Assembly: GCF_003918875.1 (NCBI RefSeq)
Contig: NW_025767412.1
Coordinates: 2,790,001 to 2,854,000 of the forward strand
Origin: Haliotis rubra
Taxonomy: Eukaryota
DNA length: 64,000 bases
Direction of reading: 5' to 3'
Shown here piece by piece: positions 10,664 through 62,058 of this stretch (position 1 is its first letter; every line of letters starts with the position of its first letter). The notes below the pieces were generated by a model. That model was not told the origin of the DNA and searched no databases. It saw only the letters and a program-made list of their open reading frames with translations. A program made the translations under genes and the position numbers.

Positions 10664-11039
10664 TTTCATTTTAGACTTTTTCTAAATTATTTTGTGGGTG
10701 TTGGAGACTGATATGTCGCTTTTGGCTGGCTGTATTTGCTATATAGTCATGGAGAACAAACATACAACCATCTGCGTGTAGGAAGATCACATTGGGACTC
10801 GTGTGAAGGAACTGACGTATATTCCATGTCAAAACATGCATGATTAATATATAGTCAAGTAACAGGTTGAGGGGTCACCTTGACTTGACGTCTTCCTGAT
10901 TTGGGGACACACTGACAAACAGTATGTACCTGATTTGGAGTCATGTGGACACATGCCCTTTAACACGTTTTCTGGTCATTCATACTTTCAGGCCATAATG
11001 TAAAACTCAGGCTGGTACGTTGATGTAAAGTTTTTTAGA

Positions 11040-12055
11040 TAAATTGACACAACATGTTTGTAAGACACATTGACACATGACATGTAACATGTTAGTGGGA
11101 CATATTGACACATGACATGTAACCTGTGTGGGACATATTGACACATGGCATGTGACATGTTAGTGGGACATATTGACACGTGGCATGTAACCTGTGTGGG
11201 ACATATTGACACATGACATGTAACCTGTGTGGGACATATTGACACATGACATGTAACCTGTGTGGGACATATTGACACATGACATGTAACCTGTGTGGGA
11301 CATATTGACACATGGCATGTGACGTGTTTGGGGACATATTGACACATGGCATGTGACATGTTAGTGGGACATATTGACACATGACATGTAACCTGTGTGG
11401 GACATATTGACACGTGGCATGTAACCTGTGTGGGACATATTGACACGTGGCATGTAACCTTTGTGGGACATATTGACACAGGCATGTAACCTGTTTGGGG
11501 ACATATTGACACATGGCATGTGACGTGTTTGGGGACATATTGACACAGGCATGTGACGTGTTTGGGGACATATTGACACAGGCATGTAACCTGTTTGTGG
11601 GACATATTGACACATGACATGTAACCTGTGTGGGACATATTGACACGTGGCATGTAACATGTTTGTGGGACATATTGACACATGGCATGTAACCTGTTTG
11701 GGGACATATTGACACATGGCATGTGACGTGTTTGGGGACATATTGACACAGGCATGTGACGTGTTTGGGGACATATTGACACAGGCATGTAACCTGTTTG
11801 GGGACATATTGACACATGGCATGTGACGTGTTTGGGGACATATTGACACAGGCATGTAACGTGTTTGGGGACATATTGACACATGGCATGTAACCTGTTT
11901 GTGGGACATATTGACACATGACATGTAACCTGTGTGGGACATATTGACACGTGGCATGTAACCTGTGTGGGACATATTGACACATGGCATGTGACATGTT
12001 TGGGGACACATTAACACGTAGGATGTGACGTGTTTAAGGGACACGTTGACACATT
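11040..12055. repeat. Minisatellite, 33-bp unit, about 30 copies
   Basis: GGGACATATTGACACATGACATGTAACCTGTGT; explains the 11-aa periodic minus-strand ORFs. Confidence 0.95.
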
Positions 12056-12599
12056 TTCTCCCACGCATTGGTGGTACATATTTGAAACAGGTTATCGACA
12101 CACTGACACAATAATATGACACCCTGGGGGGCACTTTGACACTTGTCATGACATTTATTGTATGTCTACTTCAAACCACCAAGCCATAAGGGCTTCATAG
12201 AAACTACATCACTACGCTTGAGTTATTAATAATTTGTCGGTGTTATTTAACAGACGCTACCTTGGGCGTAAGGTGACAGGTGTATTGTGAATCTGGTTCT
12301 GTTCCATACCAAGCAACATTCTTCACAATTAAACAAATCGTCTCACACGTTGATAGGACTAAATCCTCGCGCCATTCACACCATATTTCCTGACTGGTGA
12401 GTTTGACGGAATCAATATTGGGAAGCACACGTGGTCCCCTAAATCGCTCACCTTACCTGACAGCGACCCAGGTGTCACAGCGGTGTCTCGTATTGAAACC
12501 ATATCGTGATATATACCTATATCCCTCTAATCTACCTTGTTCTTTAAATATTGCGCCACATTAACTAGCAGGATTGCCGTGCTTCTTTTATGTTTCCTA

Positions 12600-12885: not shown

Positions 12886-14594
12886 CCAGTGGAAGAGATC
12901 TCATCTAAGTAAAGACGGTGGCTGGTTGAGAAATGTTCATGACGTTGAAATCTCCAAACTATGCGTGTCTCATTACCCGGAAGCGGTGTTCATGCCTTCC
13001 CGCAATAAAATAAAATGAAGTGTCGGAATGTACAAGTCTCACTTTTATTGCAGACGTATTATGACTGACTTTAAATATTATAATTTACAAAGGGTGACAG
13101 TTATAGAAAGTAAAGAAAACGCCTAACTAGCTCCAGATACACCTGAATTCCCAAGACGGCATCGTTCCTGGAGTGCCACATCTGGCCGCTATATTAATCT
13201 TGCTGCAGCAGAGGCCGAGGGTCCCTCCTGCCTGTAGTCACCTATACTGGGGGGTCGTTTCCTTCCCCATATTTATTCAAGCATTTATAACATGAACAAT
13301 ACACATTGGTATGGATATAACAGACCCTGCTCCAACCCCAACCCCCATCCCGCACCCCCCTGTTCACTGCCGCTGGTATCCTTGGGCTGCTGTCTTTGAT
13401 CACAGGAACTTTATCGGGACTTTAATCCATTTATTGAATCTTACTTCCACGTTATTAGACACCGACAGTTCAATCCGGCAACAGTAACTGATTAACGTCC
13501 AGGAGAATGCAGATTACACCGTTAAAGAGCGCGAAGAGGCCCTCTCGAAAGTCACAGCCTGTTTAATAAGGGGACTTTTGGCCCAACCTACCCCCGGAAT
13601 GTTTAGCATTCCTGAAGGTGATAGATTAACATGGTTATAGGCGATTATGTTCATTCATGAGTCTTATCTGAGATTTATTTACATGGTATCGTCTTTTACA
13701 AACGCCAAGCGTGGAATATGCTCACACAAACACAGAGGACATGCGTATACCATTCAGGGAATGAAGTCCCGCGTGACTGAGGCCGCGCGCTCTCCCAACG
13801 ACAAGATCAAAGAACTGCTATAATATATATAAAATTGTAGGTGCCTGTCGACTGACGACACGCGACATTTTTGTACCTTGCATCACGCCGTTAGCGTGAA
13901 GAGTGCTGAATATGTCAAGAATGCTACATTCACACCTTCCCTTGATTCGACTTTTAAATGAAGAGTCAATTGAATATTCATAGCGTGTAGCTGTGTTTAG
14001 CTTTGTATGGATTAACTTCCACTTCGTGTAGATTGTTCGGATTCCTGTTACTTTAACGTGGAAAACTGGACTGTTGTTTGCCCCATTCAGCCCAGTCATC
14101 AAAGTGTCATTTCATCTTACAGTTTGCGGGCTTCCCTCAGCACAATATAACTATGTACAGTCATTTTCACTCGGCAGCTGCTAACAATTGTAGGAAGGTT
14201 GTTTGATCCCAGCTTTAACAATGTACGTTACTCGACAGGCCCTCATGTCTTTGCGAGGATTAAAGATTTTGAAAAAATATAAAAACTTTGAGAAGACCCC
14301 CGACTCGAAATGCCTCACACTGCAATACATTATGACAAGGCCGGACACTTCGGTGTACCCCACCCGCCTGGTTTGCCGATCGCTACGCTACCATCGCATG
14401 CAATCGATTAAAACTTAATGTAAACATAATCATGGATGATTGGACTATCGACCACCACTCATGACACCTACCAATTCTTTATTGTTATTTCTGCAAGTCG
14501 ATTGAAACCCGATTTTGACCCTCAACTAAACGATCTTGACACAAATGGATGACGATATGTCCGGACAAAACAGGGGTGTGCTCGAAGAAAGCTC

Positions 14595-15955
14595 TCGCCG
14601 TCCACATCACCACCCCACATCACCAACTCACCGTCCACATCACCACCCCACAGCACCAACTCACCGTCCACATCACCACCCCACAGCACCAACTCAACCT
14701 CTACGTCCACCTCCTCCCCACCCCCCCACACACACACCAGCATCAACTCAACTCACCGTCCACACGTCACCACCAGCACCAATTCAACGCCTACCTCACC
14801 ACCCTAGCACCAACTCAACACTCTCATCTCAACGCCCACCACCCTAGCACCAACTCAACGCCTACATCACCACCCTAGCACCAACTCAACGCCTACATCA
14901 CCACCCCCTAGCACCAACTCAACGCCTACATCACCATGCCTAACCTCACCACCAACCATAGCACCAACTCAACGCCTACATCATCACCACCCTAGCCCCT
15001 ACCAACTCTCCAACGCAATCACCACCCCTAGCACTAACACCATCACCACCTACATCACCACGCCTAGGCATTTAACCAACGCCTACATCACCGCCTTGCA
15101 CCCTTCAGCGCCTCATCACCACCCTAGCACTACTCAACGCCTACCACCACCCTAGCACCAACTCAACGCCTACATCAACCCCTAGCACCAACTCAACGCC
15201 TACATCACCACCTAGCACCAACTCAACGCCTACATCACCACCCCTAGCACCAACTCAACGCCTACATCACCACCTAGCACTAACTCAACGCCTACCACCA
15301 CCCTAGCACCACTCAACGCCTAATCACCACCCCCTAGCACTAAACTCAACGCCTACATCACCACCCCCTAGCACCAACTCAACGCCTACATCACCACCCC
15401 TAGCACCAACTCAACGCCTACATCACCACCCCTAGCACCAACTCAACGCCTACATCACCCCCTAGCACCAACTCAACCCATACCATCACCACCCCCTAGC
15501 ACTCAACTCAACGCCTACATCACCACCCCCTAGCACCAACTCAACGCCTACATCACCACCCCTAGCACCAACTCAACGCCTACATCACCACCCCTTGCAT
15601 TAATTCAACGCCTACATCACCACCCTAGCACCAACTCAACGCCTACTTCCTTGCACCACCCCTAGCACCAACGCCTACATCACCACCCCTAGCACCAACT
15701 CAACGCCTACATCACCACCCCTAGCACCAACTTCAACGCCTACATCACCACCCCTAGTACCAATTCAACGTCTACTTCACCTCCCCCAGCATCATCTCAA
15801 CGCCTACATCACCACCCCTAGCACCAATTCAACGCCTACATCACCACCCCTAGTACCAATTCAACGCCTACATCACCACCCCTAGTACCAATTCACCGCC
15901 TACCTCACCACCCCTAGCACCAATTCAACGCCTACATCACCACCCCTAGCACCAA
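14595..15955. repeat. C-rich minisatellite, 32-bp unit (left arm)
   Basis: CACCACCCCTAGCACCAACTCAACGCCTACAT, about 42 copies. Confidence 0.95.
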
Positions 15956-16159: not shown

Positions 16160-17527
16160 ATGGTGAACCGACACATCTCTGATTCACCTGACCATGACAC
16201 TCTGCGAGAACTTTGAACTCCTTGAAGACAGACAAACATGTCAACAAAAGCTGCTTATCAAACAGACTATCAATGTACAATGTTGCGAAAGACAAATGTG
16301 CAGATTTTCCTGAAGGGATGCTTATCAAACGAGTAAAGCAATCGGGACAACTGAAAACTGTTCCAGAAAAGTACGCTTCTGATGTGTACCTGCTGTATAG
16401 ATACATACGTGGATCTGTGCCAGCTCATGTGATACAGAGTGAAGTCATGAGTAAACAGAAAACTCGATCAGATGATTATACTGATATAGAGAGCTCAGAC
16501 AATAGCTTGAATAATAGGGACACGTTAGCTCGTATGTTCACTAAACTGATGTGTTTTCATGAAGATATGCGTGAAAACTTCATGGATTTAATTGAGAACC
16601 TGCAAGATTTCAAGTCTCAGTATGAGAGCGACATGCGGGATATGATAGGGGTCCTTGAACACAAGAATGATGAAATCAAAATATACCACAGTGAAGTCCA
16701 GAAGCTCAAAGGCAATGTAGACAAATTGAAATCCGAAATCACTACATTAAAGAGTGAACTCGAAAGGAAAGATATTGACATTAAGGACATGAAAGACACT
16801 CTAAACACAGCAATAAATGGGATAAATAAAACAACTTGTGCAATTGATGGCAAAATTGACTGTATGAATACCAGAAATAAGCTGCTCTATTCAGAGGCAG
16901 TTAACAACCCAAGCTATGGTAAGACCACATCAAGGCCAGTCATTGCTGAAGGCCAATCAACTCCAAGCCATGATGTAACACACCGTGCAGTACAGCAGAG
17001 TCCCAGTCTGCGACGATATCCATCCACCACCAAGCTCAGAAGACAGCTTACTTCTTCTTGATGATAGTCCACCCCACGAACACGTGCCAGACACGGATGA
17101 CTCTTCCAGCACGAGATACAAGCCAACCTTAACCCAAGACAATACATCTAATCAATCTAAGAAACAACAGCAATCAAGGTCTGTGAGGTTTAACAATCAG
17201 TGGAGACGATCCTTCACAGGTGTGGCTAAATACAAAAACAGGAGACTCGTCATGTCATATGTGAGAGCAGACGAATCTTTTGACATAGTGAAAGATGCTA
17301 TCGTTGACTACGCCAAAGAACGGGGTGTGACCATTACGAATATAATTCTCCTGCGACATTGGGAAGGCTCTAACCCGACCTATACCATCCGTATTGCAGT
17401 CCCTGTACAGTGTGCCAAGATAATATTGGACGACAACACATTCTGGCCAGAGAACGTGAACTGCAGAGAATGGGTTCCCCGGAATACATGGTACTCTAAT
17501 GATAAACAAGGCGAGAGTGAATATTAA
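16160..17527 (+). pseudogene. LINE ORF1 (coiled coil plus C-terminal RRM-like domain), frameshifted
   Basis: Heptad-rich coiled coil in ORF 16213..17061; frameshift near 16990-17060 into ORF 16985..17527, which ends FWPENVNCREW, a motif typical of LINE ORF1 C-termini; further disruption near 16200. Confidence 0.75.
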
Positions 17528-17529
17528 CC

Positions 17530-20500
17530 ATGATGCCTTATCTTGCAAGTCTGACCATCTATGGATGTACACTGATGACCCTCGTTAACCTAGCGACATG
17601 GAACATTCGTGGTATCAAACATGGAACGTCTGAGCTGTGCAATAAGCTCGACATATGTGACGTCGTGCTTGTTACAGAGCACTGGCTAGACATGGAAAAT
17701 TCACAGTCTCTGGAGACACTACATGACAAATTTAATGTGTATTCTAAATCCAGTTGTGACTCTAACCAGCACCAACGAGGTTATGGAGGTGTAGCCATGT
17801 TTGTACGGAAAGGTGACTGGTGTAAAGCTACTCTTATTGACACCCACCACAGCCGCCACGTACTGTGTATCAAACTGCACATCTGTACCAGCCATGTGTA
17901 TATACTTGGGACTAGACTGCCATCGACAAATGTCCTTGACAGTATGTACTATGAAGAACTGTACTATGTTATGGAACTTTATGATATTCTCTCTCAAGAA
18001 TACCCAACATACCTCCTAGGAGACTTTAATACTGATATCAGTCATGGTATTAATATGAAACCCAGGGCTAGGTGCCTCTTACGACTGCTTAGCGAACGTC
18101 ACCTTTATTCTGTGGTTCCACTTGACGAGTCAAGGTACACTTTCCATAGTAAATGTCTTTGTAGACATTGATTCACTAAGCAGTGTAACTGGATATGTCA
18201 TTGACACTGGCATCCCATATAACATCTCAGATCACCTACCAATACTTGTCTGTATACTTCTTCCTGTACATGTTGGGTACTATCATGGAGAGAACTTAAA
18301 CTGGACTAAAGCAAGTGAAACTGACCTAATGTTATATCGATATGAAACAGAAAACTACTTTCGTGGAACTGAAATTAACAATGCTCACTTTGATAACAAT
18401 GTAGACTTCATCGAATACTATTGTGATTATATCACAGGCTCCTTACATGCTTCTGCTGCCGGAAGTATTCCATCCACACGCTTTAGGCCATTTCTTAAAC
18501 CTTACTGGAAGAAAGATGGTCTTAATAATCTGCATAAAGAAATGCGAAATTGTCGCCGTCAGTGGGTTGCAAATGGTAAAGTTAGAGATAAAAACGATGC
18601 TGCCTATGCAAAATATAAAGAAAGTAAACGGCTATTTCGTAAGAAACATCGCCATGCAAAACACCAGTTAGCTAAAAAAAGATTTGATGAAATCTACGAA
18701 GCAGCAGAAGTAGATGTTAAAGAATTTTACAAAACTACAAAACGTTACAAACGCTGCAAAGGTAATATTGAAAAACTTACCTATGATTCTCAAACTTGCT
18801 ACGAGGGAAAGGATATTTGCAGTCTGTTTGGACTTTATTTCCATTCACTAGCTACTCCTTCCCCTGATGTAAAATGTGACTATGTACATGCTCAGAATGT
18901 GAAAGAGCAAATTGCTAATATTGAAACAAGCGATGACATGCATAACGACATCGGTTCGCCATTGCACTGTCCAATCACTGAAGATGAAATCCATTGTTCA
19001 GTAAAACGACTTAAAGTACGAAAGTCGCCTGGTCCTGACGGTATAGTGAATGAGCACATAAAGAAGGCTGGTAGATCGCTGCTGCATCATATTGCCTTAC
19101 TATTCAATGCCATTATTACGTTTGAATACATTCCTAAATCATTTTCTATAGGTCAAATTCTTCCAATACACAAGGGCAACGGTAAACCAAAACATGACCC
19201 TGCCAATTATAGAGGAATAACCATGACTTCTGTATTAAGTAAACTCTTTGAAAGACTTCTCCTTAACAGAATAGAGTCCTGGATAGATACTAAGATAGAA
19301 TTTCCCCATCCTCTGCAATTTGGATTTAGGCGTCACTATGGTGCTGAAACCGCCGTACTGACGTTAAAAGAAAACATTGCATATTACGATGAAAGGATGT
19401 CGCCTGTATACTGTGCATTCTTAGATAATGAAAAGGCATTTGATCGGGTGTGGCTTGATGGCTAATTTATTTAACTGTATGATATTGGAATAACGGGTAA
19501 ACTATGGAGAATATTAAGGCTCTCCTATAGCTCCATGAAATCATTTGTATGCTTTGAAGGGTTTAAATCGGATACATTCCCCGTCAATCAAGGAGTAGGC
19601 CAAGGTAGAGTAATGTCCGCCTGGCTATTCACATTATTTATTAATGACCTCCTATATGAACTTGGGAATTCAGATTCTGGCTTAATTTTGCCATGGGGTA
19701 AATGCCCTGGGATTCTTCTTGCTGATGACACTACTCTGATGAGTTCCTCTACCAAAGGCCTGCAAAATCTTCTCGATGTCGCTAAAACCTATGCTCATAA
19801 ATGGCAGCTAAAATATAATGTAAGCAAGAGTGCGGTTCTACACTTTGAATGCTCAAACAATAACGTTAACATCAGTAATGTATTAATTGGTGATATACAT
19901 GTTCCACAAAGGAAATCTATTAAATATGCAGGTGTATATCTCAGTACAGATAAATCATCACTTGAACGTACAAAAACTGCATGTGAAAAGCTACGAGTAC
20001 TCATGAACACTAATCATAACAATGGGTTGTATTTTGGAGGTCTTAACCCGATATCTGCAGCCCGTATCTGGGAGAGGGTAATCTTATCATGTGGCCTCTA
20101 TGGATGTAACGTATGGGGTAAACTTCCTCTTAAAGAGTATGAAATACTTGAAGTTGTACAACGACAATTTTGTAAAAAAGTTCAGGGACTACACAAGCGC
20201 ACTCCCAGTATTGTTGTATTGGATTGTATCGGTATCATGCCAGTACAGTATTACATAGATAAAAGAGCCCTCTACCTATTAGGAAAGTTATGTAATGCAA
20301 AGTATAACTGTGTTTTTAAAGTAATGTTTCTAGTTCGCCTTGGTCAATTTATGTGTACAGATAGCTCTACATGCAATGTATATAGTAGAAAATCCCCGAT
20401 ATACAATATGCTGCAACTTGTACATAAGTATAACCTAAACGATATACTAGCTAACTATGTCAATAATGGTCAATTCATCAGTAAGAAATGCTGGTCCAAT

Positions 20501-21004
20501 GCCGTAAATGATGCTACTAAATCTCATCGAGAAAATCTATTTTATGTTCATCTTAATTCAAGACTTAGTCTGTCAAGATATATCAATATAAGATCCAGTA
20601 ATGAACACTATCTCTGGATGCTAGCTGCAGAGAAGAACGACCAGTTAACTGATATTGCAAGACTTGTATACTATGGATCAGCTGAAATTGTTTCAAGAGA
20701 ATGTTTATGTAAAACTGTCGCCAATGATATTGTAAAGCACGTGTTTATGTCATGTACGATAAATATGAATGACAGAAATGAACTTTTTAACTCCATATGT
20801 GATATTCTGGATGTAGAAACTTTTGTTAAGATCTGGGATCAAGATGATGATGTTATTCTTGCATTTTTACTTGGTGGATGTCCAATTGCGTGCATAATGG
20901 AACTAGAAAGAGATGTATGGGCAAAAGTAATAATTAATGTAAGCCATTTTATAAGGAAATGGCGATACTTGCTAAAACACTTGTATGTATATGAACATTT
21001 GTGA
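17530..21004 (+). pseudogene. LINE ORF2 (APE endonuclease + reverse transcriptase), disrupted
   Basis: EN motifs TWNIRG, TEHWL, GGVA, GDFN, SDHLP. RT motifs PGPDG, NYRGI, QFGFR, DNEKAFDRV, QG..S..LF, LADD. Frameshift/deletion near 18160 and two in-frame TAA stops at 19463 and 19472. Confidence 0.92.
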
Positions 21005-21100
21005 CTCTATCAATAATCTATCTTAATCATTTGATGTAAAATATATTATTACCACACATTGTAATCTTCATTCAGTTGGAGGAAATAAAGAATATCTATC

Positions 21101-21365
21101 ATCACCACCCCTTGCATTAATTCAACGCCTACATCACCACCCCTAGCACCAACTCAACGCCTACATCACCACCCCTAGCACTAACTCAACGCCTACATCA
21201 CCACCCCTAGCACCAACTCAACGCCTACATCACCACCCCTAGCACCAACTCAACGCCTACATCACCACCCCTAGCACTAACTCAACGCCTACATCACCAC
21301 CCCTAGCACCAACTCAACGCCTACACCACCACCCCTAGCACCAACTCAACGTGTACCTCACGCCC
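21101..21365. repeat. Same 32-bp minisatellite (right arm)
   Basis: About 8 copies immediately after the LINE tail. Confidence 0.95.
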
Positions 21366-42814: not shown

Positions 42815-44689
42815 GTAAGTATATTACTTAATCCGTGTAGTTGGGCTTTGACAATGGTACTATTTCGTACGTTTGTCTACCATGGACTATCTCTGGGCGA
42901 TTGGGACACAGTTTACTCGTTTTTACTCTACAGCGAAACACGTCGGCTAGTAACCTGTTCATTGTACACACGTGTTCTCGGGTTTCGCTTTGACAGTTGT
43001 GTTACAGGGAGAATGTCATCGTTTAAAACTATTATCCTAGCTCGTAACATGTGTGTGGCAATTTAATCAATTTAGATCTCTGGATGTGGCAAATTGTTAG
43101 TGTCATCTTCTGTGATTCAGTGATAGCCAGTCGGACGGTCCGATCGAAGTGCTTTCATTCATATATCTGTTGACAAGCACGTTCTCCGGTGTATAGCGTA
43201 TTTCATGCGGTTGCGTATTCCTTGTGGGCTTTCCGGCGCGGACACACGCTAGAGCTATGTTTATACCATGATGTAAAGGTGTAACGGTATTTCTTGTAAT
43301 TGTGTACACACAAAGAGTCTGAGTGTGTAATACCGCTCGACCAGCTGAAGGATCCGGTAATAACTGGGTGGTCATTTCGCGGGGTATTTTGAAATTGTAC
43401 AAATTTATCGTCTGTTACTGCAGATGTCGTCTGCTCCACGTGCTACATGTCGTCTGCTACATCGTTGTCAGCTCAATAAGGTTGTCAGTTTTCTGTGAGT
43501 CATGGCTCGTAGACACTGTCACCTATCTCAGGTGTACTTCCGTCTACGCCGGCGGGACGAAGCGCTTGCTTTCAAGGTCCTGTCATTTGAAGAAAAAAAG
43601 AAAGTTGATATCATAAATGTCATTTCCTTTCCTGTTATACAATGTTAGCGCGATTTGTTAGAGGCCAGTTTCTACCGTTACAATCAGGGCCCCCTATATG
43701 TGTCGCAGTGCCTGTAACGGACGTCTTACCCCGCACGGTTAACATAATCAATGCGTTCCGTTTCATATGTCAACTTTGGCCCAGGTTTTCTTGGAGACCT
43801 AGAATAAACCACGGGCTTCCCAATGAGTGGAATCCTATTTCGGCTGTTTATGTCAGCACGTTGATGAGTAAAACGCTGGTGAGACACTATTTATGAATTG
43901 TGTGCATGTTGTGTCAGATCGATATATACTAGGAGTGATCATATAGGCTCTCCACCCACATACGGTATTCTACAGCAGATATCGGCTCTCGACGTCAACA
44001 CTTGTCCTGATAAGCAGTATCAGGCGTGATTCGCGTACTAGATGAGAAACTGTTTCCTCGCGCTGTAGTCAATGTTGCCGTATTCACGGCTCTTTTAACA
44101 GGTGGTACAAAGTTGCCATGTACTCGCTCGGGCACCTGTTCAGCACCTGCTAGGCAAGGCGCTCGTATTCGTGTGGACACACGGAAATTAAAAATTTCGC
44201 CGCCGTTTGTCTATCGCTACTCAGTAATAAACACATAATTACTCTTTTATTATGACCTAACAAGTTTAATATATAAGTTGAAAGCCGGCCATACTCTCGG
44301 CCAGTATGACGCATTGTCGGGTATCAGATGACATAGTATATATCAGGATAGTCACAGGTGCTGTCTCAAATGTCTATTCCAAGCACACATCTTTGAAAAT
44401 AGATTTCCTTTACGTGAACTGTTTAATATGGGAGCCAGTCTGATGATCTGTCTCAAAAGTCACCTGACAAGCTTAATTTTGCAATGTCATCGCTTCTCTA
44501 TAATCTATAACATCAAAACATACTCATCCCGTTTTGTTTATTTCAGCGTGTATTTACCTCTCTGGAGTACGTACCGACTACTGAACATACGGACTCACGG
44601 ATCGTCCTGTGACAGTTACTGCTTCTACTACTTGTGACTTGCAACACTGAGTTTCCATACCGCATCTTTGTATAAAAGAGATAGACGCA

Positions 44690-44769
44690 ATGGCCGCATT
44701 ATCGGTATACCTGGCCGCCTTAGTCGTTGGAATGACGGCGGCATACTTCAAATTTCTCTACAGGAGAAG
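44690..44769 (+). CDS. CYP coding exon 1 (ATG, membrane anchor)
   Basis: ATG at 44690, hydrophobic 20-aa stretch, then YRR and donor AG|GTACGT at 44770. The phase-2 join to 45598 gives RRRREGEPP. Confidence 0.88.
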
Positions 44770-47700
44770 GTACGTTGAAATACAGCTTGACATATATGAC
44801 AAATGTTGAATAACGGATTTGGGTTTTATATCATTTTTATTACCCTTTGCCGAATGACTATGTAACTTGAATTGAAATTTATGTTTTTTGATAATTCTTT
44901 AATTTGCGAACATAATTTAATGATTTTTTTACCGTAATTTGGCATTTGTATAGTATTTATTATAACCCACGCGTGATTCACATTTATCCAAACGTCACGT
45001 GCGGTTGAATATTTTTTTAGTAGATAATAAACTGCTTAGCTAGCTGGATGAAACTGCGATATCGTACCTTTATTGTCGGTAGGGGATTTCGCGGCCGGGT
45101 TATACCAGGCAGTTAACGATCGCTTAGACATTGGTCTGTAAATGCATAGTTCGATAATAAATGTAAATTCGGTAAATTTGCAAGTATTTTTCTGATTTAG
45201 TTTATTAATATATGATATGAACTGGATCTAGGACGTAAGGTTAAAGTTAGGTATGCCCTCTCCTCCCCGCGTTTCCCCCCGGCGTCTTGAGCGCTCCGAG
45301 ACAGGGGGCACGGGCCATATACAGTCGCTTCACTCCGGTACGACAGCGCGGCCCGTACCGAACGTTGTAACAACAGCCAGCACATCCCCCTTCACCCCAC
45401 CCCCTCATTGTCTCACGCTCGGCACATATGGAATCGTAAACCCTAACTGCCAAAGATACACTTACATTTTGATTCTATATGAAAGAAGATACGCTTTCAT
45501 ATCGTAGACGTCTTCCTATAGGTTTGGGGGGTTACATCCTGCTAACGTTTCACCGGTTGTTTCAAACGATTGATTTTATGCTTTTTCTACGTTACAGACG
45601 AGAGGGTGAACCTCCCCTGGTTCCCGGCAATTTTCTCCTGGGGTCAGGCGCTGAGTTTGCTCAGCACGCCGTCAAATTCCTCCACAAATGCAAGAAAACG
45701 TACGGGGATATTTTCACCATCCGGCTGCTCAACCAACACGTCACCATTGTCATGGACCCTCATTCATACGAAAACTTGACCAAGGAACGCCGATTTGACT
45801 TCGACCCTATTCAGAGACAGGTGAACCATAATGTATTTAGTTTCGAACTTGTCGATGCACGCAAAATGTTGAGCGAGGCTGGTAAAAAAGTCAATGGGCG
45901 CCACCTCCATGGCGGGATGAAGAATTTCTCGGACAATTTACGGAATGCTTTCGACAAAGTCACCAACTTGGATGTCAACGGTAACGTTGTGAAGACAGTG
46001 GGCGACCAGTGGGGCCACGACGGCCTCAGGACACTTACTTCCAAAACTATCTTCGCAGCTCTATTCTATACCATATTTGGACACGGAGAATCACAGGCTG
46101 AATTCGAGCCCCAAATGTTTCACAAAAGTTTTGACGTTTTCCACAAATACTTCAACTATATGTGGTTAGGCCTTCCCGCCAAACTGTTCCCCAAGGCAAC
46201 CAAAGCCCTACAGGTTCTGTGCCAGCAACCCAGCTCAGAGGATATGCTTATGAGGGAGGGGGTATCGGAGTACATCAAATTCGCCACGGGCTTCATGAAG
46301 GATAACGCTCAGAGCGAGCAGGACATCATCGGCCACAACCTCGTGTTCCTCCACGTCAACTACAACACCTTCCGCCTCGCCTTCTGGTGCCTCTACAAAC
46401 TACTAGAGAACAAGAAAGCTCATGCAGCCCTTGCTGAAGAAATCAGAGAGTTCGTGGAAGACAAACGAGCACTTACCACAGGACAAAAGGTGGAGATTCT
46501 CATGGAGGAATTCGACAAGCTGCCTCTTCTAGGTAAATATAATTTACGCTTAAAAAATTCATTTTATAAACGAATAATCATGGGTGATGTATACTTATTT
46601 TTGAAAATTACACTTGTTTTAATGCATTGTTTTCAATTAAGTTTACCTAAACTGACGAACTTATTTTTGTAATTACAGACAGTTTTATCAAGGAGACCCT
46701 CCGCATCACGAGTGGGGTGTTCATGGTCAGATATATTGCTGAGGATACGGATTTTACCTTGGAATCTGGAGGTACCTACCGCTGTCGACAGGGTGACCGT
46801 GTTGCCATCTACCCACCTGCAATCCATATGGATCCTGAAATCTACGAAGATCCTGAGGTATGTATTACCTTGTCCTCAGTAATTACAGATTAATTCTTCA
46901 AATTTGTATCGTGGTGTATCAAACTTAAAATATTATCTGGGGAAATGCTTGGGGTGCTGCCTTGTCGGGTTTCGTATAGCACGCCCTTAAGGAAATGGAA
47001 TTACATGTTTAGCTTGATTTCGAATAATTTGAAAAGTATTTGGGTCTGTGTAGTTAAACTTTTTGCCTCTTTGAAATTGATTTTAAAGGTAAATAAAGTG
47101 GCGACGAACTATTTAGAAAGAAACTCTTGTTAAAAATAGCCTCAGCTATACTTCCTAGAGTTTGTTATTAAAAAGCGTTTGCTTGCTGAACCAACACGGA
47201 TTTCGAGCATAGGCAGAAATGTTAAAAAAATTACACGAAATTTCTAACTTACCGGAAGTGCCATGCAGGAAAAACGTTATATTGTATTATTGCACGTGAT
47301 ATTGTTTTGGTCCAGCGAGTTTCAGAAGAGGGGAAGTGTTTAAATTCTGAGGGAAAGTCACACAAAACTCAATATTTGCAGCGCGATGTTGATACTCGGT
47401 GTAATTATAGTTGAGCAGCTCCCAACGAACTTTCACCTTAACCAATGTTTTGTTTAGGGATCCGCATTGCCTAGGGGCTTGTTGGGTCGGGGCAGCAGTT
47501 TGATAAACATGAACGCTAGGGGGAAAGGCGAGGGGGGACGAGGAACGCGCATGTGTACAAACCCCGTGTCATGCAAGGCTCTTCTAACAAGTCTTTATGT
47601 CTTTGTCTACAGGAGTTCAAATACGACCGTTTTGTCGATGCCAAATTCTACAAGAATGGCAAAGAGCTGAAGCACCCAATCATCGCCTTCGGATCCCTAT

Positions 47701-47915
47701 GTCCAGGAAAAAAGTATTCCCTTCTTCAAATCAAGTGGTTTTTGCTGAACCTTATCAACAGCTTTGAGATGGAACTCTTAGACGGTGAAAGCACTATCCC
47801 CGATGTGAATTTCTATGGACATGAAATATTGCCTCCCGTGCACGACGTCCAAGTTCGCTACAGGCTTCTGGAAAACTCCCATGAACTCGATTTGGTTTCC
47901 AAGAGATCATGCTAA
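44690..47915 (+). CDS. CYP7A1-like: Cytochrome P450, clan 7 (CYP7A1/CYP8-like); spliced CDS join(44690..44769,45598..46532,46679..46857,47613..47915), 498 aa
   Basis: N-terminal TM anchor MAALSVYLAALVVGMTAAYF; basic/Pro hinge RRRREGEPPLVPG; YGDIFTI; I-helix NYNTFRLAFW; K-helix ETLR; HMDPEIYEDPE-EFKYDRF; heme Cys in FGSLCPG; C-terminal G-x-x-ILPP. All introns are GT-AG with matching phases (2,1,0). Exon lengths 80+935+179+303=1497 nt=499 codons. Confidence 0.93.
45598..46532 (+). CDS. CYP coding exon 2
   Basis: Acceptor ctttttctacgttacAG, open P450 frame (ORF 45479..46672), donor G|GTAAAT at 46533. Confidence 0.93.
46679..46857 (+). CDS. CYP coding exon 3 (K-helix ExxR)
   Basis: Acceptor ttatttttgtaattacAG; encodes DSFIKETLRITSG...HMDPEIYEDPE; donor GAG|GTATGT at 46858. 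Not in the ORF track. Confidence 0.93.
47613..47915 (+). CDS. CYP coding exon 4 (heme-binding region, stop)
   Basis: Acceptor ctttgtctacAG; EFKYDRF...AFGSLCPGKK...ILPP...RSC*. Confidence 0.93.
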   Translation, partial: EFKYDRFVDAKFYKNGKELKHPIIAFGSLCPGKKYSLLQIKWFLLNLINSFEMELLDGESTIPDVNFYGHEILPPVHDVQVRYRLLENSHELDLVSKRSC

Positions 47916-49100
47916 TACCCACAAAGCAATGCGTTATACAAAGACACCTGTATTATATTCCTAATTTATTGAACACTTGTGAGTCAAAAGTATTTTTGTG
48001 AATGAACCGACTGAATGTTCAGCATGAATCTCAGTATGAAGAGCGCCATAGCGCAGGCAATCAACGCGGAGAAAATGTCGCTGAGATTTTTTGACTTTTT
48101 CTACCCTTCTGTCTGCATGAACAAAGACTGTAACAGACAGGCATTGTTGCTGGAGTTGCATTTATTGTACAGTATCTTACGGGTAAAAGTGCAAAAGTGA
48201 AAATGGACAAGGCTGTGGTTGACCAAAGAGACAGCGTCTACCAGAGATGCCTCGTTTTCGAAAATGGACACGTGATGAATGTGCTGGTTGTGTGGCGAGG
48301 ACCAAAGTGGTAAACTATAGCCTATCTAGTCTGCAGTAGTCAGGCGCAGTGATAACCACGCCCTTGTTTTAGCGTGGTAAAGACTTGAGTCCCCATCCCT
48401 CCCCCATCCTATGACTGTACAGACTTACTACATCACATCAGGAATCGAGATGAAGGCTTGTTTCATTGAGTTTGACAAACTATATAAATACCAAAATATG
48501 AATTTGTCACGTAAAAATATTTAATAGTTAATGTATAAAAATACGATATGAAATGCATTGCTAGGAGTCTTGACAAATTGTGTCAAGTTTGTTTATTAAT
48601 TTTCCAATTTGTTACTGTGTTTCATGTTTTTGTTGATGCAATGCGCGACTGCCGATTCCTGAAAATATGAACGAACAAAGCACGTGACTTTCTTGCGTCC
48701 AGATAGTTTCATTACCATATCTTTAATTATCACTTGTTTATTTCATTTTTACATAATCCGCGAAACATTCATTAACATATTTTTATTTATTGAAATTGAT
48801 TATGTTTACCCTATATCAAAACATTCAAAATGTTATACTGATTTTGTGATCACATACGTTGTGGAAATGTTTACAAGTGACAGATGTTAGAACCGATATT
48901 TCGTATATCAACAATAATGTGCATTTTTGAAAATGTTTTTTCTATCGATTTTCATGAACGTTGAACATCCTCTGTCATAATACCATATGTATAATGTAAC
49001 ATGTAATTTATTTTGTATATATATAAATTTATTTATCTTTCGTCTCACTACTTCTTCATCTGGTGCTGAACAATAATAAATAATTTATTGAGAAATGAAT
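47916..49100 (+). terminator. Likely CYP 3' UTR with AU-rich tracts and poly(A) signal AATAAA at 49075-49080
   Basis: AT-rich stretch with several ATTTA pentamers; AATAAA is followed by a U/GU-rich downstream segment. Confidence 0.5.
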
Positions 49101-52074: not shown

Positions 52075-55000
52075 AACTATGCTGGGTAGGATCACAATAC
52101 TGACGTACTTCATCTAGAAGGTATCACAATAATGACGTATCTCAGTTAAAGAATAGCACATGACTGACGTACGTCAGGTAGAAACTATTACAATTCTGAC
52201 GTACATTAGCTAGAAGGTATCTCATGACTGACGTTAGCTAGAACGTATCACATAACTGATATACATTAGCAAGTCGCTATCACATAGGTGACGTACATTA
52301 GCTAGGATATATTGCAAGACTAACGTACATTAACAAGGATATATTGCATGATTGACGTACATTAGCAAGAAGCTATCTCGTGACTGCCGTACATTAGCAA
52401 GGATATATTGCATGACTGACGTACATTAGCAAGAAGCTATCTCGTGACTGCCGTACATTAGCAAGGATATATTGCATGACTGCCGTACATTAGCAAGGAT
52501 ATATTGCATGACTGACGTACATTAGCAAGAAGCTATCTCGTGACTGACGTACATTAGCTAGGATATATTGCATGACTGACGTACATTAGCTAGGATATAT
52601 TGCATGACTGACGTACATTAGCAAGAAGCTATCTCGTGACTGACTTACAATAATTAGCTAGGATATATTGCATGACTGACGTACATTAGCAAGAAGCTGT
52701 CTCGTGACTGACTTACAATAATTAGCTAGGATATATTGCGTGACTAACGTACATTAGCTAGGATATATTGCGTGACTAATGTACATTAGCTAGGATATAT
52801 TGCATGACTGACGTACATTAGCAAGAAGCTATCTCGTGACTAACGTACATTAGCAAGGATATATTGCATGACTGACGTCCATTAGCAAGAAGCTATCTCG
52901 TGACTGCCGTACATTAGCAAGGATATATTGCATGACTGCCGTACATTAGCAAGGATATATTGCATGACTGACGTACATTAGCAAGAAGCTATCTCGTGAC
53001 TGACGTACATTAGCTAGGATATATTGCATGACTGACGTACATTAGCTAGGATATATTGCATGACTGACGTACATTAGCAAGAAGCTATCTCGTGACTGAC
53101 TTACAATAATTAGCTAGGATATATTGCATGACTGACGTACATTAGCAAGAAGCTATCTCGTGACTGACTTACAATAATTAGCTAGGATATATTGCATGAC
53201 TGACGTACATTAGCAAGAAGCTATCTCGTGACTGCCGTACATTAGCAAGGATATATTGCATGACTGACGTACATTAGCAAGAAGCTATCTCGTGACTGAC
53301 GTACACATTAGCTAGGATATATTGCATGACTGACGTACATTAGCAAGAAGCTATCTACTCGTGACTGACGTACATTAGCAAGGATATATTGCATGACTGA
53401 CGTACATTAGCAAGAAGCTATCTCGTGACTGACGTACAATAGCTAGGATATATTGCATGACTGACGTACATTAGCTAGGATATATTGCATGACTGACGTA
53501 CATTAGCAAGAAGCTATCTCGTGACTGACTTACAATAATTAGCTAGGATATATTGCATGACTGACGTACATTAGCAAGAAGCTATCTCGTGACTGACTTA
53601 CAATAATTAGCTAGGATATATTGCGTGACTAACGTACATTAGCTAGGATATATTGCGTGACTAACGTACATTAGCTAGGATATATTGCATGATTGACGTA
53701 CATTAGCAAGAAGCTATCTCGTGACTGACGTACATTAGCAAGAAGCTATCTCGTGACTGACTTACAATAATTAGCTAGGATATATTGCATGACTGACGTA
53801 CATTAGCAAGAAGCTATCTCGTGACTGACTTACAATAATTAGCTAGGATATATTGCATGACTGACGTACATTAGCAAGAAGCTATCTCGTGACTGACTTA
53901 CAATAATTAGCTAGGATATATTGCGTGACTAACGTACATTAGCTAGGATATATTGCGTGACTAACGTACATTAGCTAGGATATATTGCATGATTGACGTA
54001 CATTAGCAAGAAGCTATCTCGTGACTGACGTACATTAGCAAGAAGCTATCTCGTGACTGACTTACAATAATTAGCTAGGATATATTGCGTGACTAACGTA
54101 CATTAGCTAGGATATATTGCGTGACTAACGTACATTAGCTAGGATATATTGCATGATTAACGTACATTAGCAAGATGTATCTCGTGACTGACGTACATTA
54201 GCAAGAAGCTATCTCGTGACTGACTTACAATAATTAGCTAGGATATATTGCATGACTGACGTACATTAGCAAGAACGTATCACATGACTGACTAACAATA
54301 ATTAGCTAGGATATATTGCGTGACTAACGTACATTAGCTAGAATATATTGCGTGACTAACGTACAATTTAGCTAGGATATATTGCGTGACTAACGTACAT
54401 TAGCTAGGATATATTGCGTGACTAACGTACATTAGCTAGGATATATTGCATGACTAACGTACATTAGCTAGGATATATTGCGTGACTAACGTACATTAGC
54501 TAGGATATATTGCATGACTGACGTACAATAGCAAGAACGTATCACATGACTGACTTACAATAATTAGCTAGGATATATTGCGTGACTAACGTACATTAGC
54601 TAGGATATATTGCGTGACTAACGTACATTAGCTAGGATATATTGCATGACTAACGTACATTAGCTAGGATATATTGCATGACTAACGTACATTAGCTAGA
54701 AGGTATCACATGACTGACGTACATTAGCTAGGATATATTGCATGACTAACGTACATTAGCTAGAAGGTATCACATGACTGACGTACATTAGCTAGAAGGT
54801 ATCACATGACTGACGTACATTAGCTAGAAGGTATCACATGACTGACGTACATTAGCTAGAAGGTATCACATGACTGACGTACATTAGCTAGAAGGTATCA
54901 CATGACTGACGTACATTAGCTAGAAGGTATCACATGACTGACGTACAATAGCTAGAAGGTATCACATGACTGACGTACATTAGCTAGAAGGTATCACATG

Positions 55001-55675
55001 ACTGACGTACATTAGCTAGAAGGTATCACATGACTGACGTACAATAGCTAGAAGGTATCACATGACTGACGTACATTAGCTAGAAGGTATCACATGACTG
55101 ATGTACATCAGCTAGAACGTATCACATGACTGACGTACATCAGCTAGAACGTATCACATGACTGACGTACATTAGCTAGAAGGTATCACATGACTGACGT
55201 ACATTAGCTAGAAGGTATCACATGACTGACGTACATCAGCTAGAACGTATCACATGACTGACGTACATCAGCTAGAACGTATCACATGACTGACGTACAT
55301 CAGCTAGAAGGTATCACATGACTGACGTACATCAGCTAGAACGTATCACATGACTGACGTACATCAGCTAGAAGGTATCACATGACTGACGTACATCAGC
55401 TAGAAGGTATCACATGACTGACGTACATCAGCTAGAACGTATCACATGACTAACGTACAATAGCTAGAAGGTATCACATGACTGACGTACATCAGCTAGA
55501 AGGTATCACATGACTGACGTACATCAGCTAGAAGGTATCACATGACTGACGTACATCAGCTAGAACGTATCACATGACTGGCGTACATTAGCTGGAAGTT
55601 ATCACATGACTGACGTACAATAGCAAGAACGTATCACATGACTGACGTACAATAGCTAGTAGGTATCACATGACA
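52075..55675. repeat. Large minisatellite, 32-bp unit, about 110 copies, several variant types
   Basis: TGACTGACGTACATTAGC core followed by TAGGATATATTGCA, AAGAAGCTATCTCG or TAGAAGGTATCACA. Confidence 0.97.
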
Positions 55676-59729: not shown

Positions 59730-59866
59730 NNNNNNNNNNNNNNNNNNNNNNNNNNNNNNNNNNNNNNNNNNNNNNNNNNNNNNNNNNNNNNNNNNNNNNN
59801 NNNNNNNNNNNNNNNNNNNNNNNNNNNNNNNNNNNNNNNNNNNNNNNNNNNNNNNNNNNNNNNNNN
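59730..59866. other. Assembly gap (N run)
   Basis: 137 N. Confidence 1.
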
Positions 59867-60335: not shown

Positions 60336-60861
60336 TATTTGTGCGTTTACTGCATGTGTTTGAATATCAATCAATCTTTATATTCAGTAGAATGACCACA
60401 TGGCCTAGAGTACAGTTATCCGAAGTATATATTACAGAGCGTCATCAGAAAGCTGGAGTATTCCTGAAGGCGTCAGTAAACAGCACACAACAAACTATCA
60501 CGATATGAGAAAGATTTTATGATCTATCCAATATCATTCTGAAGAATCAATATATTCTTTGACTTATCTGAACACGAAGTCCCCACAACCGAAAAGAAAT
60601 ATTGACTGACATTTAGAGTCAGTGCAGAAACTGCCATAAACCCGATATTTCAGTCAAAGGTGGTCAAGCTTACATTATACGGTAACATTTGATTATGTAC
60701 AACCCATGCGTGTGTCAGTGCCAGAGTTGGGAAAACCTGTAAACTTACCTGCAAATCTTAAAAACATTTGTTTCATTATATCGAGTCGGGAGCCAGTATT
60801 GCAAAAATCCGTGCAGAATTTATACACAGTGCATGGAGTTTTTAACAGACCACATGAAAGA

Positions 60862-61852
60862 CGTTGACAGATATACCAAAACGACCTGTCGACGGCAATA
60901 CGACACATATCTCACGACGGCCTGTTGTCAGCAATATGACAGATATAACACGACTAACTGTAGACGGCAATATGACACATATCTCACAATGGTATGTTGT
61001 CAGCAATATGACAGATATGCCACGACTAACTGTAGACGGCAATACGACACATATCTCACAATGGTATGTTGTCAGCAATATGACAGATATACCACGGTTA
61101 ACTGTAGACGGCAATATGACACGTATCTCACAACGGCCTGTTCTCAGCAATATGACAGATATACCACGGCTAACTGTAGACTGCAATGTGACACTATCTC
61201 ACAACGGCCTGTTGTCAGCAATATGACAGATATACCACGACTAACTGTAGACGGCAATATGACACGTATCTCACAACGGCCTGTTGTCAGCAATATGACA
61301 GATATACCACGACTAACTGTAGACGGCAATATGACACATATCTCACAATGGTATGTTGTCAGCAATATGACAGATATACCACGGCTAACTGTAGACGGCA
61401 ATATGACACATATCTCACAACGGCCTGTTGTCAGCAATATGACAGATATACCACGACTAACTGTAGACGGCAATATGACACATATCTCACAATGGTATGT
61501 TGTCAGCAATATGACAGATATACCACGGTTAACTGTAGACGGCAATATAACACGTATCTCACAACAGCCTGTTGTCAGCAATATGACAGAAAATCCACGG
61601 CTAACTGTAGACGGCAATATGACACGTATCTCACAACGGCCTGTTGTCAGCAATATGACAGATATACCACGACTAACTGTAGACGGCAATATGACACGTA
61701 TCTCACAACGGCCTGTTGTCAGCAATATGACAGATATACCACGGCTAACTGTAGACTGCAATATAACACGTATCTCACAACGGCCTGTTGTCAGCAATAT
61801 GACAGATATACCACGGTTAACTGTCGACGGCAAGGTGACATATATCTCACAA
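60862..61852. repeat. 72-bp tandem repeat (heterodimer of two 36-bp subunits), about 14 copies
   Basis: CAATATGACAGATATACCACGACTAACTGTAGACGG + CAATATGACACGTATCTCACAACGGCCTGTTGTCAG. Confidence 0.95.
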
Positions 61853-61854
61853 CT

Positions 61855-62058
61855 GTATTCAAGCTATATGGCGGCTGTGTGTAAACAATCGAGTCACGAC
61901 CAGTCAATCCAGATCAGTAACAACCCAGTGATCAACAGCATGAACATCGATCTACACAATTGGGATACGATGACATGTGTCAACCCGATTCCGTTAGTCG
62001 CCTCTTACGACAAACATGGGTTGCTGTAGACGAGTTCTATCCCGGATTTTCACGGGTT
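61855..62058 (-). mobile_element. SINE family C (internally deleted)
   Basis: Reverse family C motifs. Confidence 0.8.

Follow-up and report, generated by a model that had tools for sequence, protein, structure and literature searches.

We describe a cytochrome P450 gene of the abalone Haliotis rubra whose product carries a Cys-ligand loop three residues shorter than the canonical form. The gene lies in a stretch of 64,000 nucleotides (RefSeq assembly GCF_003918875.1, contig NW_025767412.1, positions 2,790,001 to 2,854,000 of the forward strand), called the window below and numbered from its first letter. Judged by sequence identity and clade membership, it is an orthologue of CYP3067, a single-copy clan-7 family of spiralians. 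The most economical reading is a single loss of three residues at the root of the family, since retained by molluscs, annelids, nemerteans, one brachiopod and one flatworm. We consider it probable that CYP3067 is a monooxygenase of the endoplasmic reticulum (ER), supplied by a reductase, with a sterol-like compound or another lipid as its substrate, and that the shortened loop may alter the thiolate environment while function is kept.

A short Cys-ligand loop in an intact, expressed gene

The codons at 47685-47714 (GCC TTC GGA TCC CTA TGT CCA GGA AAA AAG) encode A-F-G-S-L-C-P-G-K-K, confirming the preliminary description of this DNA, which had noticed AFGSLCPGKK with three residues between Phe and Cys; the canonical number is six. 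The loop itself, F-G-S-L-C-P-G, occupies 47688..47708 on the + strand, with the codon of the ligand Cys428 at 47700-47702, and the stretch encoding it starts 72 nt into the last exon (47613-47915). When aligned by HMMER to CYP7A1, to CYP8B1 and to zebrafish CYP8A1, the abalone protein shows in each case a gap of 3 residues just ahead of L-C; the aligned loops read FGS, three gaps, LCPG in the abalone protein, FGSGATICPG in human CYP7A1, WGSGVSICPG in CYP8B1 and WGTEDNLCPG in zebrafish CYP8A1. The absent residues correspond to the G-x-x of the canonical F-x-x-G-x-x-x-C, and the comparison with the CYP7A1 loop drawn in the preliminary description is correct according to these alignments to solved clan-7 structures. 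Pfam was rejected as a detector of the gap, as its match to exon 4 is of equal length in protein and profile, and the deletion becomes visible only in clan-7 comparisons.

The gene has four exons on the + strand, and its spliced coding sequence of 1497 nt encodes 498 amino acids and a stop, with no internal stop codon. The shortening is consequently in-frame, mid-exon and part of an intact 498-residue gene, as had been claimed. All three introns are bounded by GT..AG, and the product is 100% identical to the RefSeq H. rubra protein 'cytochrome P450 7A1-like' (P0280), so that the gene is already annotated. Exon 1 (44690..44769) supplies the start codon and the N-terminal hydrophobic membrane anchor (residues 1-26 and 2 nt of codon 27); it matches residues 1-27 of a relative, P0001, and its donor reads AG followed by gtacgt. 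Exon 2 (45598..46532; residues 27-339) runs from the N-terminal domain to the I, J and J' helices, its product is 95% identical to P0001, and it includes the I-helix segment H-V-N-Y-N-T-F-R (46352..46375, residues 279-286). Exon 3 (46679..46857; residues 339-398) carries the K-helix ExxR, E344-R347, at 46693-46704. Exon 4 (47613..47915; residues 399-498), which follows an AG acceptor, contains the meander motif FKYDRF (47616-47633), the Cys loop, the L helix and the TAA stop at 47913-47915. Against a cut-off of 22.8 bits, exons 2 and 3 match the Pfam p450 family (PF00067) at 43.9 and 28.9 bits, and exon 4 alone falls below it at 15.6 bits; full-length orthologues carry PF00067.

We aligned contigs from four public runs, one DNA and three RNA-like, to positions 44600-48000 of the window. 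The DNA run, from a second sample of H. rubra, covered this interval fully with one substitution, one 20-nt intronic deletion and an unchanged loop. The deletion is a length polymorphism of intron 2 at 46587, where the second sample lacks the 20 nt. The three small RNA-like runs come from two related abalone species, and precisely 44770-45597, 46533-46678 and 46858-47612 are absent from their contigs. We take these runs to be RNA because of their intron-less joints, the run-type label itself being only a guess. Over 47611-48000, loop included, they are continuous, with 2-18 substitutions and no indel. The gene is transcribed and correctly spliced. It is also under strong purifying selection, as 35 of the 38 listed coding differences from the more distant related species are synonymous, a count drawn from a partial list that shows 40 of 97 differences.

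These observations leave almost no room for the explanation that the apparent 9-nt loss is an assembly error, a product of mis-splicing or the mark of a decaying pseudogene. The independent DNA run has no indel in the loop, the transcripts of two related species span the loop without one, the frame is intact with every intron GT..AG, and the same loop length recurs in 60 proteins from many species. The earlier judgment that decay or mis-splicing is unlikely therefore stands: the frame is intact, the GT..AG junctions are seen in transcripts and the loop is free of indels. It had also been anticipated that reads or transcripts might restore nine extra nucleotides; neither the DNA run nor any of the three RNA-like contig sets contains them.

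CYP3067, a short-loop clan-7 family of spiralians

The short loop is already in print for one annelid, so the trait itself is not new. In their annotation of the Capitella CYPome, Dejong & Wilson (PLoS One 2014; PMC4229089) reported CYP3067A1, named by the nomenclature committee and clustering with the CYP7s. The haem loop of CYP3067A1 appears in their Table 2 as 'AFGS...LCPG', and the text calls the gaps 'peculiar', questions whether the gene is 'fully functional' and notes support from expressed sequence tags (ESTs). Capitella protein P0071 has ESFR at 344, FKYDR at 400 and AFGSLCPG at 424, and we equate it with CYP3067A1 because these positions match the printed ones exactly. The abalone protein is 48% identical to P0071 over its full length, falls in the same clade with a Shimodaira-Hasegawa-like approximate likelihood ratio (SH-aLRT) support of 99, and has the same three-residue gap in its haem loop. 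The two proteins, one from a mollusc and one from an annelid, further share AFGSLCPG, HVNYNT, and ExxR and FKYDR at corresponding positions, and both genes are expressed, the annelid gene by ESTs and the abalone gene by the transcript contigs of related species. What is new here is the breadth of the trait over at least five spiralian phyla, its single origin and the finding of a sole clan-7 gene in abalone. Besides the Capitella paper, no other paper mentioning 'CYP3067' was found in the literature searched, most subscription journals lying outside it.

The I-helix gap ascribed to CYP3067A1 in that paper (PMC4229089) was not upheld. There is no gap relative to CYP7A1, and the apparent one arises from forcing the generic AGxDTT motif onto the segment; as aligned, the I-helix is unusual in its residues and normal in its length.

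Placement in clan 7 is clear from sequence comparison, with expect values of 2e-61 to CYP7A1, 1e-53 to CYP8B1 and about 1e-44 to CYP8A1, the three together spanning 2e-61 to 8e-44, against 1e-14 to CYP74 and about 1e-12 to CYP51. The protein falls outside the CYP7 family itself: identity is 26-28% to human CYP7A1 (by structural alignment) and 32% to lungfish CYP7A1, where the P450 family convention is at least 40%, and lungfish CYP7A1 (P0134) sits in a different clade from the short-loop proteins. The RefSeq name '7A1-like' is thus based on similarity only.

We searched the whole 1.38-Gb assembly in six frames with the abalone protein and with a canonical-loop annelid protein as queries. A canonical-loop clan-7 paralogue in abalone was rejected as a candidate, since both queries gave only the P450 locus described here at convincing scores. 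The remaining matches, at 21-34% identity and expect values above 1e-5, probably represent P450s from other clans. This exon-by-exon six-frame search of the abalone assembly, which a very divergent copy could escape, revealed no second clan-7 gene, whereas Capitella also has a canonical-loop clan-7 gene, CYP39B1 (PMC4229089).

The preliminary description had proposed a database search across Lophotrochozoa for conservation of FGSLCPG, and the searches made here find the short loop family-wide, in 60 proteins. A word-based search with exon 2 gave 136 relatives, of which 26 full-length ones were retrieved, and all 26 have the short loop. They come from gastropods (Haliotis, Patella, Lottia, Gigantopelta, Littorina, Babylonia, Nucella, Batillaria, Lymnaea, Pomacea), bivalves (Argopecten, Mytilus, Ruditapes, Mya, Sinanodonta, Dreissena), Octopus, the annelids Owenia and Capitella, the nemerteans Lineus and Tubulanus, and the brachiopod Lingula. 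Within the loop, F424, G425, C428 and G430 are invariant among these orthologues of five phyla, an invariance that, on this alignment, puts the trait far beyond chance. E344/R347 and the meander R404/F405 are invariant together with C428, as are H279, V280, N281, Y282 and N283 of the I-helix, and T284, F285 and R286 are conserved in at least 90%. The alternative anticipated earlier, in which orthologues would be canonical and selection relaxed, is contradicted both by these short-looped orthologues and by the synonymous excess among the abalone differences (35 of 38 listed).

An exhaustive HMMER search of 1.8 billion representatives returned 3777 matches, and we inspected the best 150 of them. 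Among these 150, each short-loop protein is either a recognisable member of the group or an unnamed environmental sequence, and all other matches with a readable loop have canonical spacing, the nearest, with about 32-34% identity, being a protein of Owenia and the CYP7A1 of lungfish. Divergent named members occur in the flatworm Macrostomum lignano (YGVLCPA, YGVLCPG) and in Aplysia (FGTLCPA), and an unnamed protein in which His replaces Phe joins the heterobranch gastropods (Lymnaea, Aplysia) in the tree. The 60 short-loop proteins collected follow the pattern [F/Y/H]-G-x-[L/I]-C, with exactly FGSLCPG in 36, and their named members belong to gastropods, bivalves, Octopus, annelids, nemerteans, one brachiopod and one flatworm.

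The clan-7 phylogeny that had been called for was then available as a maximum-likelihood tree in which 26 proteins have the short loop and 42 the canonical one, obtained by a quick search and rooted at its midpoint only. The short-loop proteins form one clade, lying on one side of a single branch with an SH-aLRT support of 99 and a length of 0.8. A single change of loop state suffices on this tree, a value as low as which was reached in 0 of 500 label shuffles. The midpoint-rooted tree shows a single cluster and not the direction of change; to our knowledge every other P450 family has the long form, and a single deletion is the economical reading because of this. The proposal of an atypical subfamily is borne out in that the proteins form a spiralian-wide clade within clan 7 (SH-aLRT 99), named CYP3067 in Capitella.

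Several proteins met in these searches are of separate interest. The most divergent short-loop relatives, P0125 (GFGTLCIG) and P0130 (SFGNLCIG), are uninterrupted open reading frames (ORFs) on anonymous metagenome contigs, with P0130 branching deepest among the short-loop proteins; the ORFs encoding the two lie at L010 3001-4353, L011 3001-4353 and L012 229-1824. Two other proteins, P0122 (Owenia, 923 residues) and P0128 (1032 residues), each contain two canonical-loop clan-7 units, with two PERF and Cys-loop sets, and probably arose when gene prediction joined neighbouring duplicated genes. The loop region of the first unit of P0128 looks broken.

Predicted structure and candidate chemistry

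We modelled the H. cracherodii orthologue (95% identical) with AlphaFold2 from the 26-sequence alignment. The model has normal P450 topology, an N-terminal helix at residues 2-23, a mean predicted local distance difference test score (pLDDT) of 89.7 and a predicted template modelling score of 0.89. Foldseek matched it to at least 500 P450 chains, the top one being CYP7A1 with template modelling (TM) scores of 0.82/0.86; the best Protein Data Bank matches are CYP7A1, CYP8B1 and CYP8A1 (TM 0.73-0.87), and CYP51 comes next by structure, far behind. The loop block, residues 421-430, has a mean pLDDT of 73 in this model, which lacks haem. We rejected this dip as a sign of a strained short loop, as a canonical control, lungfish CYP7A1 modelled in the same way, dips further: its equivalent block averages 56, and residues 443-447, the G-x-G-x-x part of its loop, fall below 50. 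The dip is a property of haem-less models of clan 7 and not of the deletion; the control suggests that what CYP3067 lacks corresponds to the bulge of the canonical loop, where the model is least determined.

Human CYP7A1 (3SN5, 3DAX, 3V8D) is the best solved match (expect value 2e-61, TM 0.80-0.86). The abalone protein shares with it the FGS start of the loop, the CPG that includes the Cys, the I-helix N-T, FKYDR and an N-terminal anchor followed by R-R-x-GEPPL. It differs in its separate clade, in a loop three residues shorter (G-A-T missing), in a meander six residues shorter and in its I-helix, H-V-N-Y-N-T-F-R against A-S-Q-A-N-T-I-P. The Asn-Thr pair N283-T284 nevertheless aligns without a gap to the Asn-Thr of CYP7A1. 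This pair is present in the monooxygenases CYP7A1 and CYP8B1, whereas zebrafish CYP8A1 has none at the aligned position (...qgnagpaafw). In P450 monooxygenases the I-helix alcohol serves proton delivery for O2 activation, and it is not known from the reductase-independent enzymes CYP8A1, CYP5A1 and CYP74. The hallmark of the isomerases, loss of the I-helix Thr, is thus not seen in CYP3067, where T284 is kept in at least 90% of orthologues beside the invariant N283.

Seven residues ahead of the Cys, the Phe is packed beneath the haem, whose potential it tunes; the Cys loop contributes to the proximal surface contacted by the redox partner. We propose that CYP3067 would remain a haem-thiolate enzyme anchored in the ER membrane, in which the deletion would shorten the path from Phe to Cys and trim the loop bulge on the proximal, redox-partner face. 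The electronic environment of the haem would possibly be altered, and function would not be abolished; the enzyme probably carries out O2-activating, reductase-fed monooxygenation of a sterol-like or other lipid, as do its nearest structural relatives CYP7A1 and CYP8B1. We lean to such a conventional ER monooxygenase because the Asn-Thr pair, the ExxR, the meander, the Cys ligand and the N-terminal anchor are all kept.

Several points weigh against this proposal. The abalone loop does not have the canonical F-x-x-G-x-x-x-C-x-G spacing, though that spacing is a signature and not a requirement, the family still being filed as P450. In the I-helix, H-V-N-Y-N replaces the small A/G-G residues, so that both faces of the haem are remodelled, and the retained Asn-Thr is itself weak evidence for O2 activation. 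The loop block is modelled without haem and at the reduced confidence given above, and the exon-by-exon search of the abalone's own genome could miss a very divergent paralogue. Beyond the Capitella paper, the literature searched yielded no functional work on any CYP3067 member, no work on mollusc clan 7 and none on shortened Cys-ligand loops.

The same features could be read as those of an enzyme that dispenses with a redox partner, the short loop and remodelled I-helix together serving the isomerisation or cleavage of a pre-oxidised lipid, for instance a prostaglandin endoperoxide or a fatty-acid hydroperoxide, as in CYP8A1, CYP5A1 and CYP74. Clan 7 includes the isomerase CYP8A1 (prostacyclin synthase; 2IAG, 3B98), which needs no reductase and is among the best structural and sequence matches, sharing the clan-7 fold (TM 0.73-0.87, expect value about 1e-44). 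CYP74 (allene oxide synthase and hydroperoxide lyase; 3DAM, 2RCH) is the next-best solved family by sequence after clan 7 and also has a non-canonical Cys-loop length. Redox partners dock on the proximal face, to which the loop belongs; H-V-N-Y-N, invariant among the orthologues, is an atypical I-helix sequence; and the long branch to the family (0.8) is consistent with a functional shift. We nonetheless hold this explanation to be unlikely. Thr284 is kept, where zebrafish CYP8A1 lacks an aligned Asn-Thr pair, and loop length does not track reductase-independence in the known cases: CYP8A1 has a loop of canonical length, with Trp for Phe. The similarity to CYP74 is weak in sequence (1e-14), and CYP74 enzymes are soluble or plastid-targeted and peroxide-using. 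The analogy with the shifted loop length of CYP74, offered in the preliminary description, points the other way, as the CYP74 Cys loop has an insertion and not a deletion; CYP5A1 and CYP74, moreover, are not known to have the I-helix Thr. Altered or reductase-independent chemistry, as suggested there, is on this evidence mildly disfavoured.

A loss of catalysis would be a further way to tolerate the deletion, since a haem- or lipid-binding, sensing or structural protein has no need of electron transfer. The hallmark spacing is absent, and CYP3067A1 was questioned as 'fully functional' by Dejong & Wilson (PMC4229089). Against this, at least five phyla share an unchanged Cys ligand, ExxR, meander Arg and I-helix, the synonymous bias is strong, and the pattern of conservation is what catalytic constraint looks like, so that we find a loss of catalysis highly improbable. 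Known catalytically inactive relatives of P450s usually lose residues of just this type. A bolder proposal, which we regard as quite doubtful, is that the ancient deletion together with the invariant, bulky H-V-N-Y-N-T made a mechanistically distinct haem-thiolate enzyme of spiralians. Were this so, its thiolate electronics or use of redox partners would be shifted, or it would act without a reductase on peroxidised lipids, and the sole clan-7 P450 of a mollusc such as abalone could produce a lineage-specific signal derived from sterols or oxylipins.

Surrounding repeats and significance of the family

Elsewhere in the window, a run of long ORFs on the + strand at 16213-21004 resembles a retrotransposon of the long interspersed nuclear element (LINE) type. 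An ORF1-like protein within that interval has a coiled coil and weak Filament/HMMR_C matches; an endonuclease/exonuclease/phosphatase domain follows at 17530-18168, and reverse transcriptase is encoded by two ORFs at 18122-19462 and 19535-21001, all on the + strand. We take the pol frame to be interrupted because the reverse transcriptase is split over two ORFs. Arrays of a C-rich 32-bp unit, CATCACCACCCCTAGCACCAACTCAACGCCTA, flank the element at 14594-15955 (about 42 copies upstream, GC skew -0.59) and at 21100-21351 (about 8 copies downstream); the element may have landed in a satellite, or else the array belongs to the ends of the element.

A 3.6-kb satellite at 52099-55674, with about 110 copies of a 32-bp unit at 82% matches, begins 4 kb downstream of the P450 gene. 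Further tandem arrays lie at 11064-12054 (33-bp unit, about 30 copies) and 60865-61853 (72-bp unit, about 14 copies), and the long ORFs that run through these repeats, at 10988-12149 and 60833-62029, are most likely not genes. Positions 59730-59866 are a run of 137 N, an assembly gap or masked sequence.

We close with the significance of CYP3067. FxxGxxxCxG is the textbook P450 signature that sets the environment of the thiolate ligand, and a deletion within it that predates the split between molluscs, annelids, nemerteans, brachiopods and flatworms would mean that loop length is not essential. As a natural experiment, the family thereby allows the tuning of haem chemistry by the Cys pocket to be studied. 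The label '7A1-like' does not justify calling the protein a cholesterol 7-alpha-hydroxylase, CYP3067 being a separate family. As apparently the sole clan-7 enzyme of abalone, it bears on sterol, bile-acid-like and eicosanoid metabolism in molluscs, and among spiralians CYP3067 is a candidate player in lineage-specific signalling by lipids.

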